64,000 bases of DNA, taken from NCBI RefSeq assembly GCF_964204645.1, contig NC_134031.1, positions 4,464,001 through 4,528,000 on the forward strand, written 5' to 3'. Origin of the DNA: Tubulanus polymorphus. Taxonomy: Eukaryota > Animalia > Nemertea. The number at the start of each line of letters is the position of its first letter. Within the stretch, counting starts at the first letter, position 1. Of this stretch, positions 21,483 through 27,719 are shown piece by piece. The notes beneath the pieces are model-generated. The model was not told the origin of the DNA and made no database searches. It saw only the letters and a program-made list of their open reading frames with translations. A program made the translations under genes and the position numbers.

Positions 21483-22569
21483 GTGTTCCAGACCGTGTTT
21501 GAATGTGTTCAGAGCATCAATTTTCCGCATCCCTGAATCCAAAGAGTTCCACGAAGATGAAGCAATATATTAGAAGCAACGTCCGCCAAATGTTTCTAGA
21601 CAGTCGGGATGCGGGGACAAAAGATTGCCAGAACTGGATCGGAGGGGACGTGCTGGTACATATGGAACTTGCTGGTATATATGGAACTATCAAATCGTGT
21701 AGGAAACGAGGAACCGGGTTGTTTAGTTATAGCTTTACAATACTTTTACTATTTTGCTCTCTACCGCGATTTTGTTCATACAACACTGCGAATAGGTAGG
21801 CAGAGAATGAAGGGCTTTTTTGATTTTATGAACGCCTGCCTGCGACGAACGCACGGAGTGTATTCGTCTCTAAATGTCGATTGGTCATCAATTCGCCATT
21901 AACTCTGATGATGAAAAACAGTTATCGGGGCCGGTGTCGTCTGCGTGTCAGCGAGTTTTTATTGACATCGTTTTTATTGACATTGCTCTCGCAGTAATGT
22001 AGAAAGTGGATTTATTTTTCAAATTACACACGATCAACGCAAAAACAAATCGACCAAACTTTCAAGAGATCGTTCCGTTTCGGGAGAATATGGAGTCGTC
22101 TTCGGTCAATACCCACGGACAGAATTATCGATACAGTCCAATGCGATGCGGATTGGAAATTGATTGAATTCCTACTGTTTTTTCACGGGTGTTCGACTCC
22201 ACAGTTCCGAGTTAAGACTTGACTCTGAGTTAACTCATTTAAAATGAAATAACTTAAAATCAGAGTTAACGTTTAACGTTAACTGTGGAACTGTGGGCCC
22301 AGGTGGCTGATTTCAGACTCTATAGCCTACATGACTGGAGACTTTTCACTCGAAAGGACACAATTGAGAATAAAACTACATCGTTTGGTTTTAAACGTGT
22401 TTTGATGCATGTAGATGAATAATAATACACGTGACGCGAACGCGAGACAATAACACGATTGAATTTGTACATTTTCAACTCTGAGTATTCGAAAAGAATA
22501 GTCTTACTATCTTATTATGTCATAATTCTGAATTCATTTAATATCAATCATTTTATTAGTAATCCTAAT

Positions 22570-22889
22570 CATGGGCGTCACCAGATGGGGTCGGGGGGTG
22601 AGGACTTTTAAAAAATAAAAGTTCCGCACTTTTCTAGTTCCAAATTTTGTTTTTATTCACACTCCGGAAATCTTTTGAATAGTTTGAATTAAAATGTCCA
22701 GAAAACGCCCCTCATAAATCAAATTCGAATTCCAAAAATTCAGGCTATTTTACAACATTCAAGCAATTTCGACGATTCAGAAATGCTCGTTTCACTTCGG
22801 CGCCCGGCGGAAATAGCGCAAAATATCGCATAAATCTCCCCTTTATGAATTATTCTGACCCCCTTTTTAAACATTCTAGTGACGCTCTG
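22570..22889. mobile_element. MITE-like element (CA.GGGCGTCAC.AG ... CTAGTGACGC.CTG)
   Basis: Inverted termini catgggcgtcaccaga / tctagtgacgctctg. Confidence 0.55.
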
Positions 22890-22939
22890 AGATCAGTTGC
22901 ATAGGGACCGTTGACAGTCTTTCACCTATTGTAAACAAT

Positions 22940-24520
22940 CTATTCTAAAACCCAAACACAGTCGTCACTTCTCGTAGAAACGCCTGTAAACTTTCCGTTT
23001 CTAATCGCCAGGAATTTTTTGCCGAAGAGAGCGAATAGGACGACCTCTCGTTCACCGCTCGACGACTGGGTATCGGCTGCCACAGACCACTCTTCCGCTC
23101 CGTAATGCTGGCCTTTAGTGTACGTGTAATCACCGTTTGGATCGTAACCTTGAATTTAGAAAGTTCAGTAAAAATGATTAGGATAGAAAGCGGCCGAATG
23201 GTGACCTATGTTACTAATAAGAAACACGCCCAATAGCAGATCGTGGTATATTTACCGAGGTATCCATTGGATGCGTAATTCTTATAGAAGTAGCAACCAT
23301 CGCCTTTACTTTTACGTTCCTCGACCCAGTAACTCGTGCTTTCCGGTCGATCTCTGAGGACCAGCGTACTTCTCTCACCACTCGCCGGATGGAATTTTAC
23401 TTGCCCTAAACGATAATCAGTTACATCTCATCATTGTAGTGACTTGGTGACTAATGAAACTTTAAGTCGCTCTGTGAAAACTTGGAGTAATCATTTGATG
23501 TCAAATGATTACTCCAAGGGGAAACGTACCCTAGCGCAAATATAATAATCTTTATATACTCAATATCTCATCGTTACCTGATTAAAAAAAGTAGCTTAAT
23601 CACATAATGACGTTTATAAAGTTGCTCTACAGTTACCTGATTCAGCTAGGTATTTTCCAGTAAGTTTATGACGGAACGCTCGGCCTGGTTTCGCGTGGGT
23701 TACGGGAGCCGCGGATTCGGGGGATATCGCTGATTGGACAGCGTTGCCTCCCGCGTGGACGATCTCTTTAGCCAACGAATCGATACGCGTGTCCAGATTA
23801 GATTCATTCCTGGAATGATCGGCAACATTCTTTGCTTCACAACCGAACGCGATATTCAGTGACAATTTTTTTGACTTATCGTATACATACGGATATACCT
23901 GAAATCTATCCAAAGTAAACCGGCAGTAATGATTCCTAGCCAACCTGTCGCCTTCCAAGACGGTTCTGTCATCGCTGGTATGATTGTCTTTTCTTGGCTA
24001 TCAGCGTACGTCAATTCCCTTTTGCAGTTCTTCGAATCCTGAGAAATAGATAATACATCTATCTAAAACTGTCAAAATCGACCATTGGACCATTAATGTA
24101 TGATAAAACACGCATCACAAACAGTTTTTTTAAAGAGAAAAACGACATGGTGGCTAGCAGTTGTAGGATGGTTTATTTGCTTACTTAGGAATCAAATCAT
24201 TTTAATAGATCTGAAAGTGGAAAAAAATAAAGAAGATACTCACTTGATATTTATTTGTCATAAAACAACAAACGCATGCAGCGCCATCTACACCCTTTGC
24301 CATGCTGAAAGAACAGAAAAATGTACGCGTACGTTAAGTTATGACTCAGTTGATGGGATTTTCAGTCTATATACCTTTCGTTGATGTCACCAGACATTCC
24401 ACCCTCTATATCCATCCACACGTTTATTCCTCGCACTTTCAGACCTTTAAAGACTCGTTTAACGAGTTCCTGTCGGTCCCACTGGTATGACAGCATGACA
24501 TGACGCGTGGCTGTAGCCAT
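22940..24520 (-). CDS. TIR domain + beta-trefoil (fascin/ricin-B-like) fusion protein, 292 aa. Exons (minus strand) 24520-24375, 24304-24244, 24038-23899, 23809-23637, 23405-23256, 23148-22940. Possible upstream 20-nt micro-exon 25131-25112
   Basis: Six phase-consistent GT-AG exons: MATATRHVMLSYQWDRQELVKRVFKGLKVRGINVWMDIEGGMSGDINESMAKGVDGAACVCCFMTNKYQDSKNCKRELTYADSQEKTIIPAMTEPSWKATGWLGIITAGLLWIDFRNESNLDTRIDSLAKEIVHAGGNAVQSAISPESAAPVTHAKPGRAFRHKLTGKYLAESGQVKFHPASGERSTLVLRDRPESTSYWVEERKSKGDGCYFYKNYASNGYLGYDPNGDYTYTKGQHYGAEEWSVAADTQSSSGEREVVLFALFGKKFLAIRNGKFTGVSTRSDDCVWVLE*. TIR_2-type motifs (VMLSYxW, VWMD, YxxSxNCxxELxYA, IIP, WIDF) are clear. The beta-trefoil call is inferred from three GxYL...W repeats. 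Confidence 0.88.
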
Positions 24521-24830
24521 TATATTTGCTTTCCCAGATCTTGAAAATAGATATTTTCGAAATAGTTACGAATTTATGAATTACAATAAAAAGCACACTC
24601 AAAAGAATTCGTTTTCCTAGTCCTTCATTAGAAGCTGATTCATGTTAGATATATATTTTGAAAGGGTACTTGATCTTTTACATAATTATAATCGAATTTG
24701 ATGTTGATCTTTTTCTCTTCATTCTTATGCTAGTCTCAAATAAAAAGTATGATTTACATTTTCAGCGAAGCCTATACACTTCGTAAATTTGAATATCACA
24801 TCGAATGTCAAATGAATTGCATGTTGATAC

Positions 24831-25019
24831 CAGGGGTGGATTAAAGGGGTGGTCTTTAGGGTCTGGGCCTTTCGGATGAATTTCTTCAAAAATACCTAAA
24901 AACGTGGGCGGAACCATGTAGAACCCCATTAGAGGCCGTTGATTAGGCAGCTTAATCGGAGAAATGTCTTATCTTTTCTTCCGGACTTCGGCCTTCCAAT
25001 TTTCCTAGATCCGCCCCTG
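24831..25019. mobile_element. MITE with CAGGGG(T/C)GGAT...ATCCGCCCCTG termini (hAT-like ends)
   Basis: Terminal inverted repeats. The right end cggccttccaattttcctagatccgcc is identical to the copy at 40952-40978. Confidence 0.75.
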
Positions 25020-27719
25020 AATATACTTCAGACCCATATCCTGACCCATGTCCCATCGGGGAGAGGACTTTACCAATCACCCGAAAAAAAGACAAATCAG
25101 AAAGTACTTACGATTTCTTTACAACTAGGTCCTGCAGATTGAACTATACAGGTTAGCAATACGTGTACAGGTATAACTGCACTGGAATACTCGCTGTGCG
25201 TGCACTAAATAATATAATAGAGGTATTATGGGTCGTCATGGCCACAAATCTATATACCGGAACGATTGGAGGCCGTGTCTAAAATTGATAGACGTATTGT
25301 TTCAACGTTCCATTGCCGCCACAGCTATCCAAATCCATTGTCAATTGATTTTATACGTTTTGCCCATGATTTTCAAATCAGATCGAAGTTGGTGTTCTGG
25401 TTGAAATTGATCGACGAGTGTAGTAAAATGACGCGCTATTTCGAGATGAAATTGCAGAGAATATACGCGCGCTGGCGACAGAAGTTATTTGCCTTGATAG
25501 ATGTCAGGTAGATGGCAGGGGATGCAACTGGTTCAGTCCAAGAATATTTCCTTAGTTCTAATGGGCTTGACTATCTTGACAAAAGGTTTTGTCAAATTTT
25601 GATACATATACCAAATACGAATGAGTTGCTGAAATGAGTTTGTTCGTTGCCGATCTGATATTTCGTGAAGTACATTGCTGTATTTTTCTTATGGTGATTC
25701 TTTTGTTTATCTCTTGATAAATATGATAGATGGGGCAGGTGCGATGAAAATATGCTTGGATTTCATCATTTGTAACTGATGGAACGTATTTACATCATTT
25801 GTGACTGAGGCCTGAACCGAAAGGGTTTGAATATCTCGACATTTTTTGTTTGGTATTTGATTGGTCATCGGTGATAGAACCAGAGATGATTTGGTCTCAT
25901 CGTGCCGAAATCTTTCCGTCCTATTTCATATTCGAAACGTTTTTTGCTTAGTCGCGGTTCATCTCTTGAAAGCCCCTTGTTTTTTTACCACTGGTCAGAT
26001 TATAGTCACGTTACATCACATTTCTCGTAACCAATGTAATAAATCTATTTACTATGTTAAATTGTCACGTCTTCGACGACATAAAATGATTCCTCAAAAC
26101 GTTCGACTCTTACTTCGCTAGTCATCATAGCTATTATTGGAACCGCAAGACAGTCGAACCTTATCAAATATACGCTTAATTTACAACGTTTGTTTATCCA
26201 TCCGATTGCTACAATTTCTATTTAATCTCTAATTTCTTATTTTTTCTAAAATCTTTTCATATTTTTCCAATGGCTGTTTGCTTTACTGAATATTCATTTG
26301 TATTCACGTTATCAATGCGATTTTAACACTGGTTTTCTATCGAAACGTTCCGTTTTTTGTGTAAATTTGTGTTGACATCCAGCGGTAATGACACAGGTGA
26401 AACTCAAGTTGCGGAATTTCGTATTGCAAAATAGTTTCCTAGGATAAGCTCTTAAAACTGGAATTCCTTGCATCTATATATTCTAAAGGGTGAATCTTAA
26501 TACAAGTACACAACTCTGTTCTAACGAAACTCATAATTTCTACATACATAAGTTTTCCTTAAAATTCTATATCATAAATAAAATATCCACATGTCTAAAA
26601 TGCTCAATTTCTTCATCGCTACTTTGTCGTTGAAATGCTCTGTTTATATCTTTACCGTTCGTTGTGAGCCATGTTACGGACTCGGGGTGTGGTGGTAGAT
26701 ATTTGATTGCCATTGTAGACGGCGAGCCTTAATGGACGTATTGATGCTGCCGATAGTGTAGATAAACGCGGTCTTCATTCCTTTATACCGTTCTTGTTGT
26801 AGTTTGGTTATGTTATTGATGCAACCACAGGGCGCTTTTAAAATATTCATTGTCGAACAATTAATTCACTATTCCATATTTACATATGTAATAACTATAT
26901 GACTGTTTCTTGCGTGTCCGTACATGGCTATAGCGAGGGCGTTGGATATTTCACCCTCACGTAGAAATTGCCATTCACGGAATATCTTAAGTTTTTTCCT
27001 GATTGTAGCTTATGTTTATTCGATAGTTAATCACAATGCCAATTTTGCCGGTTAACATGGCACACGCCAATCAACGTTAGTTTTGAAGATACTTTTAAAG
27101 ATACTGAAAAAGATACTAAAAATTAAGAAAAACTATCTGAGTTCTAATTCAAATACTCAAAACCCTAACGTATCGACAAATCTGAATACATATCAAATAC
27201 GTATGAATTACTGAAATCATATATTTCTTTTGTCCATTTTAAACGCCAGGATAATGATAGAATTTCGTGACGTACATTTTCAGCATTTTCGTATGTGATT
27301 GTATCATCTCTGTTTACCGAAGTAGAAAATCTCAGTTGATTTCTGTAGGAAAAAAGACGCGGAGACAGAAATGTACAATTAAATATTTTCTTTATTTCGT
27401 AGTTCTATCCTCGTATCTAGTTTTCTCATTGTTGTATTATGTTTAAAATATCCGCTGAACACAAAACCGGTGGACAACACTGAATTATATATTATCAACT
27501 ACCACGCTTGAATTTGTACGTAATTAATTGTAATTAATCTTTTTCACAAAATAATCGACCTGCACTGATATTGACTGAGTTTTCGTTATTGTCTTTTATC
27601 TTCCTGTTTAAGCGGTTTCCGAAAAAATCATGGTTTTCTCGAGTAGTGACGAAATCTTCGCTATCAGCGCCGCCTCGTGGTATCGAAGTGGGCAGCATGG
27701 ATAGTTATTACCGGGGCCT

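Follow-up and report, generated by a model that had tools for sequence, protein, structure and literature searches.

A TIR protein with a predicted beta-trefoil half in the nemertean Tubulanus polymorphus, a candidate ligand-gated NAD+-cleaving enzyme

Animal TIR enzymes beyond SARM1 are only now being recognized, and the activating switch is known for almost none of them. A locus in the genome of the nemertean Tubulanus polymorphus raises the question of whether one small animal protein may carry both a TIR domain that cleaves nicotinamide adenine dinucleotide (NAD+) and the domain that switches it on. The locus lies in a stretch of 64,000 nucleotides (nt) of contig NC_134031.1 (assembly GCF_964204645.1, positions 4,464,001 to 4,528,000 of the forward strand). 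We call this whole stretch the window and count all positions from its first letter. An original prediction, made from the letters of the window alone, had proposed a soluble fusion of a TIR domain and a beta-trefoil that acts as a self-contained intracellular immune sensor and enzyme. We found that the gene is real and expressed, that its C-terminal half models as a beta-trefoil, and that the protein belongs to an old animal family in which both halves are kept. We favor a Glu77-dependent NAD+-cleaving TIR regulated by the trefoil, that is, a one-protein ligand-gated sensor-effector, with a probability of roughly 0.55.

The gene and its transcripts

On the minus strand of the window, six coding exons between 24520 and 22940 follow one another in consistent phase and give 292 codons and a TAG stop. 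All introns of the gene are bounded by GT..AG (Table 1). We aligned public sequencing runs of the same organism on window positions 22300-26300. A 1422-nt contig of run X2 (2014, study P2) joins all six coding exons at exactly the predicted junctions, and a 653-nt contig of run X3 (2024, study P1) repeats four of these junctions and adds a joint to a 5' exon at 25112. At 24539 the X2 contig has eight loose letters, which match the end of this 5' non-coding exon. The DNA-like run X1 is contiguous through the introns and unspliced, as genomic DNA would be. In a tblastn search against the window, the RefSeq protein XP_074655014.1 (LOC141908741, "uncharacterized protein", Tubulanus polymorphus, 292 amino acids (aa)) covers all six exons with 100% identity within their bounds. 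The exons of the window were searched singly, and XP_074655014.1 served as the stand-in for whole-protein analyses. The locus is a real, expressed gene, and the predicted exon structure, protein length and splicing agree with the spliced contigs of two studies and with RefSeq. The list of open reading frames (ORFs) of the window shows only fragments of the gene, as a gene-model artefact or a decaying pseudogene made of chance ORF pieces would. This explanation is already refuted by the exact junctions in both studies, the identical RefSeq protein, and the full-length orthologues and shared introns described below.

The transcripts also fix the limits of the protein. An in-frame TAG lies at ~25146-25144 within the transcribed 5' exon, 18 codons before the ATG, and there is no ATG in between. 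Since the 5' exon is non-coding and carries this stop, no upstream receptor domain is attached to the TIR. The alternative that the TIR exons are spliced to upstream receptor domains was not seen in the contigs, and the X2 contig carries all six exons, including the last ones, the omission of which had also been considered. The motif KYQDSKNCKRELTYA of the original prediction straddles the junction of exons 2 and 3, as it had stated. There is no AATAAA near the 3' end of the RNA contig (22424), and the true end may be further downstream.

Table 1. Features of the TIR-trefoil gene in the window (residues are those of XP_074655014.1; UTR, untranslated region).
Feature	Window positions	Strand	Details
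5' non-coding exon	25112..25161	-	3' end fixed at 25112; 5' extent past 25161 undefined; X3 joint 24539/25112 (GT..AG)
Exon with 19 nt of 5' UTR and coding exon 1	24375..24539	-	ATG at 24520; coding 24520-24375, residues 1-48 plus 2 nt; TIR strand A, helix A and BB loop (D37, E39, G44)
Coding exon 2	24244..24304	-	residues 49-69; RNA joints 24304/24375 and 24037/24243 (cut +1)
Coding exon 3	23899..24038	-	residues 70-116; helix C with Glu77, TIR strands D-E
Glu77 codon (GAA)	24015..24017	-	catalytic position of NAD+-cleaving TIRs by family-profile alignment
Coding exon 4	23637..23809	-	residues 116-174; TIR helix E, linker, first trefoil strands
Ala/Pro/Ser linker, variable	23748-23692	-	residues ~137-155; trefoil from residue 156 (23691)
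Coding exon 5	23256..23405	-	residues 174-224; middle of the beta-trefoil
Last exon, coding part	22940..23148	-	residues 224-292; TAG stop 22942-22940; end of the beta-trefoil
3' UTR	22424..22939	-	at least to 22424; X2 contig ungapped from 23146 to 22424

A TIR domain and a predicted beta-trefoil

The N-terminal half is a TIR domain of the TIR_2 type, as originally predicted. XP_074655014.1 matches Pfam TIR_2 (PF13676) over residues 8-121 with 76.5 bits (E 3.2e-21; cut-off 28 bits), and exons 1 and 3 alone match TIR_2 positions 1-33 and 65-108, respectively, in co-linear order. We modeled the protein with AlphaFold2 and a 65-sequence family alignment (mean predicted local distance difference test score 91.6, predicted template modeling score (pTM) 0.88). 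The TIR domain spans residues 4-134 in the model, and its first strand begins at residue 7. In the VIA structure comparison, residues 4-134 matched Hydra TRR-2 (Z 16.7), the SARM1 TIR (Z 16.2, root-mean-square deviation (rmsd) 1.9 Å over 126 residues) and MyD88 (Z 15.4). The best sequence match in the PDB is Cat1, a CRISPR TIR that degrades NAD+ (E 3e-4). In the family profile, Glu77 (K-R-E-L, in the predicted helix 72-83, which is helix C) is aligned to the Glu of SARM1 "HKEIV" and of Cat1 "DEL", and D37-x-E39-x4-G44 to the D, E and G of the SARM1 BB loop. The Glu that the original prediction had placed in a C-x-x-E-L helix is thus at the catalytic position, and of 63 orthologues at least 95% have it.

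The rest of the chain holds no further recognizable domain. Pfam domains other than TIR are absent at E 0.2, and up to E 1 only TIR_2 and TIR appear. There is no transmembrane segment (the highest Kyte-Doolittle window of 19 residues is 0.98) and no signal-like N-terminus. Pfam found neither the ARM repeats and two SAM domains of SARM1, and the upstream in-frame stop excludes further N-terminal domains, nor a death domain, a leucine-rich repeat (LRR) or an immunoglobulin (Ig) ectodomain of the MyD88, TLR or IL-1R type, and the ORF is complete at 292 aa. Hydropathy, Pfam and the complete ORF agree with the predicted soluble protein lacking a signal peptide, transmembrane, LRR, Ig, death, SAM or ARM regions, whose architecture is unlike TLR, IL-1R, MyD88 and SARM1. 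It is a cytosolic two-domain protein of an N-terminal TIR_2 domain, a short variable linker and a C-terminal trefoil.

This trefoil is invisible to Pfam. No Pfam trefoil family passes the threshold in XP_074655014.1, and exons 4-6 alone gave no match. In the AlphaFold2 model, residues 156-292 form a beta-trefoil with high confidence. Foldseek with this region returned a probability of 1.0, E ~1e-7 and template modeling (TM) scores by target of 0.75-0.83. The VIA list is headed by Symfoil (Z 18.6, rmsd 1.6 Å, 117/124 residues, spanning 158-292), fascin-1 domain 1 (Z 17.9), ThreeFoil (17.8) and SeviL (16.9), with FGFs, MIR and many lectins further down. The ESM Atlas model gives the same picture, with TM scores of 0.75-0.81 to ricin and MIR clusters. 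As far as models can tell, the trefoil fold is certain, and this part of the original prediction was borne out.

The kind of trefoil is another matter. The original prediction had read the signature of fascin, ricin-B lectins and IL-1/FGF in the C-terminal half. These families are all tied by Z, none passes Pfam, and the trefoil cannot be assigned to any of them. XP_074655014.1 has no match to ricin-B or R-type lectins (PF00652, PF14200) and lacks their QxW motif, its subdomains ending in YW, EW and VW. It has no match to Fascin (PF06268), being a single trefoil and not four in tandem, and none above threshold to the FGF or IL-1 families. Sub-threshold matches among the 65 family members are scattered over RicinB_lectin_2 (7/65, best E 0.0016), FGF (5/65, E 0.055 or worse) and Fascin (2/65). 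The sole trefoil touched by the family profile in sequence is SeviL, at a marginal E of 0.056. Of the three ~40-aa repeats originally described, the threefold arrangement is seen in the predicted fold, but hhalign comparisons between the three subdomain alignments were not significant (probability 0.1%, P 0.5-0.7). Because the subdomain repeats are not significant in sequence, the threefold symmetry is a property of the predicted fold only. With the known modules SeviL, MytiLec/Mitsuba, BEL, fascin, FGF/Symfoil and MIR, the Tubulanus trefoil shares the 12-strand threefold fold (Z 15-19, the same TM range by target as above) and a conserved Trp that closes each subdomain. It differs from them by belonging to no Pfam trefoil family, by the lack of QxW, by its single copy compared with four in fascin, and by its location, as most lectin- and FGF-type trefoils are secreted whereas the Tubulanus protein is cytosolic.

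Conservation suggests that the trefoil does more than fold. Mean column identity in the family alignment is 0.70 for the TIR, 0.36 for the linker and 0.65 for the trefoil, and by this measure both domains are under strong constraint. A near-invariant stretch of surface type, GYDPNGDY..K.QHYGAEEW, and the conserved Arg and His residues R159, H163, R185 and R257 point to a defined, putative site. We considered that the TIR is an enzyme whose trefoil senses nothing. The trefoil would then be a constitutive structural or self-association module, or an autoinhibitory lid freed by proteolysis or modification, and regulation would act via expression or other proteins. The pTM of 0.88 suggests a fixed TIR-trefoil packing in the model that would suit such a module, a ricin-type QxW sugar motif is missing, no lectin family passes the Pfam threshold, and an isolated orthologue TIR is active without its trefoil (see below). 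However, the trefoil is as conserved as the TIR, the GYDPNGDY stretch and the four Arg/His residues are conserved beyond what a fold core needs, and trefoils are typically binding modules. We therefore regard a non-sensor trefoil as rather unlikely.

An old family among TIR-only proteins

We scanned 1.84 billion representative proteins by phmmer with the last exon alone as the query. The scan gave 22 matches, including full-length proteins of ~300 aa, and a trefoil-only search returned the same TIR-trefoil family. XP_074655014.1 itself was retrieved by a search that started from one of these ~300-aa proteins. Judged from these matches, the trefoil subfamily appears nearly confined to the TIR-trefoil architecture. 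One match, a 1477-aa planctomycete-type protein (P0015), was set aside, since its similarity lies in Calx-beta repeats and was taken as chance. Orthologues of 285-303 aa with both halves are present in anthozoans, a scyphozoan, a hydrozoan, two annelids, a flatworm, an acoel and many teleosts, under the database names "uncharacterized" or "TIR domain-containing". Their full-length identity to the Tubulanus protein is 42-68% (~47% to the teleost Conger, P0012). A sequence of EukProt Opistho-2 has the same TIR-trefoil architecture. The name Opistho-2 refers to a clone of the filasterean Pigoraptor chileana (PMC7147346). The family apparently includes this filasterean, with the caution that the Opistho-2 sequence is very similar to animal proteins.

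The history of the gene looks like that of its carriers. In a maximum-likelihood tree, teleosts, anthozoans and spiralians are grouped largely as in taxonomy; the tree was a quick search with supports from the Shimodaira-Hasegawa-like approximate likelihood ratio test only, and the divergent row P0011 was excluded. All five coding introns of Tubulanus stand at alignment positions of Nematostella introns, within the few residues resolved by tblastn ends, and in the tarpon Megalops all three visible introns are at shared alignment positions. In the Tubulanus genome, the trefoil part is found at the window locus only. This animal gene is old, vertically inherited and single-copy, and many lineages have lost it.

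Since TIR_2 is all that Pfam recognizes, the family would count as TIR-only in earlier surveys. Nematostella A7SAI7 and Exaiptasia A0A913WV41, for example, would be placed among the "TIR-only" proteins of the cnidarian surveys (van der Burg 2016, PMC5094078). The Tubulanus protein departs from that class, as a further folded domain makes up half of it. The same TIR subtype is elsewhere joined to SAM, Ras/Roc and Death domains, and one metagenomic protein combines it with an unrelated ricin trefoil that Pfam recognizes. Our full-text literature searches found no paper describing a TIR with a trefoil, ricin or fascin architecture, within a coverage that did not extend to the ecTIR-DC classes of Gerdol 2017. 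The TIR-trefoil fusion looks undescribed, and what is new here is that a conserved "TIR-only" family carries a second, trefoil domain. The family is small, soluble, single-copy and strongly conserved from cnidarians to coelacanth and teleosts, and its second half is a compact fold of the binding type that domain databases miss.

Several relatives depart from the common form. A 244-aa protein (P0011, EukProt Opistho-2@69029) carries a trefoil of the same subfamily, with 59% identity to the one in P0048, after an N-terminus without a Pfam match. Because this N-terminus is not a TIR, the trefoil subfamily can pair with another partner domain. A divergent protein of 344 aa on a very long tree branch (P0013) has a transmembrane-like hydrophobic segment, a weaker TIR_2 match (31.7 bits) and then the trefoil, and its sequence may represent a membrane-anchored version of the architecture. 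Teleost entries of ~237 aa (P0098, P0099, P0146 and similar) end inside the trefoil, as does a 236-aa herring entry whose TIR was assayed, and the cod entry P0146 ends in unrelated residues. In these fish entries the last exon may have been predicted wrongly, or a short isoform may really exist.

Catalysis, the proposed switch and its rivals

A 2026 preprint reported that most non-TLR animal TIRs keep the catalytic Glu, that several of them make cyclic ADP-ribose (cADPR) in E. coli, and, in its text, that mutation of the Glu abolished activity in all cases (Hurieva et al., bioRxiv 10.64898/2026.04.20.719644). Two of the tested TIRs (Table S4 rows 145-146 of that preprint), compared by eye from their printed sequences, appear to belong to the TIR-trefoil orthologous family. 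The coelacanth protein (Latimeria H2ZXV5, 296 aa, TIR 3-140 tested, catalytic residue 74) depleted NAD+ with no cADPR isomer, and the herring protein (Clupea A0A6P8EVF3, 236 aa, TIR 4-138 tested, catalytic residue 74) produced cADPR. Both TIRs follow the family consensus almost residue for residue and share its H.MLSYQWD N-terminal motif, its S..CKKEL..YAD helix with the catalytic Glu and its GWLGL.TAG.LW.DFR segment. The herring TIR is nearly identical to that of a sardine family member (P0072), and the coelacanth protein has the length of the teleost members. The preprint makes no mention of a trefoil or lectin domain.

From these putative orthologues, the Tubulanus TIR is expected to consume NAD+ through Glu77, draining NAD+ or making products of the cADPR or ADP-ribose (ADPR) type. 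The enzymatic part of the original prediction is thus largely supported through orthologues as far as the by-eye assignment goes, but it was already published as a pattern. The intact Glu is present and conserved as predicted, yet it is far less remarkable than had been assumed, since most non-TLR animal TIRs keep it. Similarly, on whether the family was already characterized, the TIR half of its by-eye orthologues has been shown to be active, while we found no paper describing the trefoil half.

Several observations weigh against a ligand-gated, SARM1-like immune enzyme. SARM1, AbTir, Cat1 and plant TIRs show the WxxxE pattern of catalytic TIRs, in which a Trp precedes the Glu by four positions, but the Tubulanus protein has Asn73 there (N-C-K-R-E; family consensus N-C-K-K-E). 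The SARM1 "SYRR" motif reads "SYQW". The D, E and G residues of the SARM1 BB loop, "SYRR" and the WxxxE Trp matter for activity. Because of Asn73 and "SYQW", the pocket differs from that of SARM1, and the products may differ too. The activities in the preprint came from isolated TIRs in E. coli and not from full-length proteins, and their link to the family is a comparison by eye. Finally, an identity of 58-64% to cnidarian and 57-58% to Pigoraptor orthologues is unusual for an immune sensor. The strong conservation, single copy and vertical inheritance are more in keeping with a conserved enzyme of signaling or execution than with a pathogen sensor that evolves fast.

The comparison with SARM1 carries these points further. 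The two TIRs share the fold, the position of the catalytic Glu and the D-x-E-x4-G pattern of the BB loop, and in both proteins the TIR has a partner domain in the same chain, which is putatively regulatory in the Tubulanus protein. In contrast to SARM1, the Tubulanus protein has a beta-trefoil as the partner instead of ARM and SAM domains, its TIR is N-terminal, and TIR identity is only ~18%, with the Asn already noted in place of Trp.

The missing Trp could also mean that the protein is no enzyme. It would then be a non-enzymatic adaptor whose TIR docks on TLRs or other TIR partners and whose trefoil localizes it, for example to membrane lipids or actin, comparable to the segment of TIRAP that binds phosphatidylinositol bisphosphate (PIP2). 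The top structural match of the TIR is of receptor type (Hydra TRR-2), MyD88 is close behind, fascin-1 is among the tied best trefoil matches, and potential partners are plentiful, with at least 37 TIR_2 matches in the genome. Against this, TRR-2 carries Thr at the position of Glu77, whereas the family keeps Glu there across Metazoa in at least 95% of orthologues, and the TIRs matched by eye as orthologous depended on the Glu for consuming NAD+ or making cADPR. Nematostella has a single TLR, and the family persists there. We consider a pure adaptor quite improbable.

Returning to the regulated enzyme that we favor, we propose the following course. The trefoil would be the regulatory half, restraining the TIR through a fixed inter-domain packing until a conserved ligand binds the trefoil. 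This would permit TIR-TIR assembly and complete the active site. Glu77 of the assembled TIR would then cleave NAD+, so that NAD+ is drained or products of the cADPR or ADPR type are made, and a single protein would serve as both sensor and effector for cell death or NAD-derived signaling. Ligand gating is proposed by analogy: small ligands turn on the bacterial effectors TIR-STING, TIR-SAVED and Cat1, and in SARM1 the ARM domain acts as the lock. The strong activity of the isolated coelacanth TIR, which lacks its trefoil, fits a restraining role of the trefoil by analogy with such systems. Like the Tubulanus protein, TIR-STING, TIR-SAVED and Cat1 (CARF-TIR) are small soluble proteins of a TIR and one compact domain, which binds a ligand in the bacterial ones. 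Their sensor domains are unrelated to the trefoil, however, and the Tubulanus family is eukaryotic with conserved introns. Ligand-induced filaments have been shown for the bacterial proteins and are only inferred for the TIR-trefoil family.

The original prediction had named a glycan, actin or a pathogen product as ligands that would cluster the TIR, and these are candidates only. The protein lacks QxW, lies in the cytosol and evolves slowly, all of which speaks against its being a classical secreted lectin or taking part in an arms race. A more specific version of the regulated enzyme, which we hold only tentatively, has the trefoil act as receptor for some conserved molecule of the cytosol, for example a messenger derived from nucleotides, a phosphoinositide or an exposed glycan, and its binding would drive TIR filaments. 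On that view, the family would be a ligand-gated NADase that predates the bilaterians and possibly the metazoans, and a second executioner of the SARM1 kind that mammals, insects and nematodes have lost. A ligand of the trefoil, if found, would make the gating of an animal TIR NADase directly testable, and Nematostella, Clytia, Macrostomum and several fish are tractable carriers of the gene. If the ligand-gated trefoil receptor is true, it would be an animal counterpart of the bacterial TIR-STING and TIR-SAVED effectors. The principle itself would not be new, as the combination of a TIR with a sensor domain is familiar and an intact Glu is common among non-TLR animal TIRs.

The window is intron-rich, animal-like DNA of ~38-40% G+C in an assembly of 268 Mb, and the ORFs neighboring the gene, between 12 and 36 kb of the window, were not informative. 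Elsewhere in the Tubulanus genome, many of the TIR_2 matches are in TLR-like single-exon frames of ~770 aa. Contig C10 (~1.29-3.45 Mb) and C3 8716808-8724474 hold many such matches in uninterrupted frames of ~764-785 aa, which suggest a large, partly clustered set of TLR-like genes with a single exon each. Within the gene, the introns carry repeated DNA. Intron 4 contains a perfect inverted repeat of 18 nt at 23481-23518 with 2 nt between its arms (CTTGGAGTAATCATTTGA / TCAAATGATTACTCCAAG). Short contigs of the DNA run stack exactly on it (depth 63 vs 42), and it probably belongs to a small repeated element. The depth of the DNA-like run also rises at 24042-24175 (~290) and 24980-25113 (~164), compared with 42, and many contigs with loose, mutually different flanks end around 24100-24129 and 24989-25024. 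The two spikes fall in intron 2 and the 5' intron and resemble interspersed repeats that are short and present in many copies.

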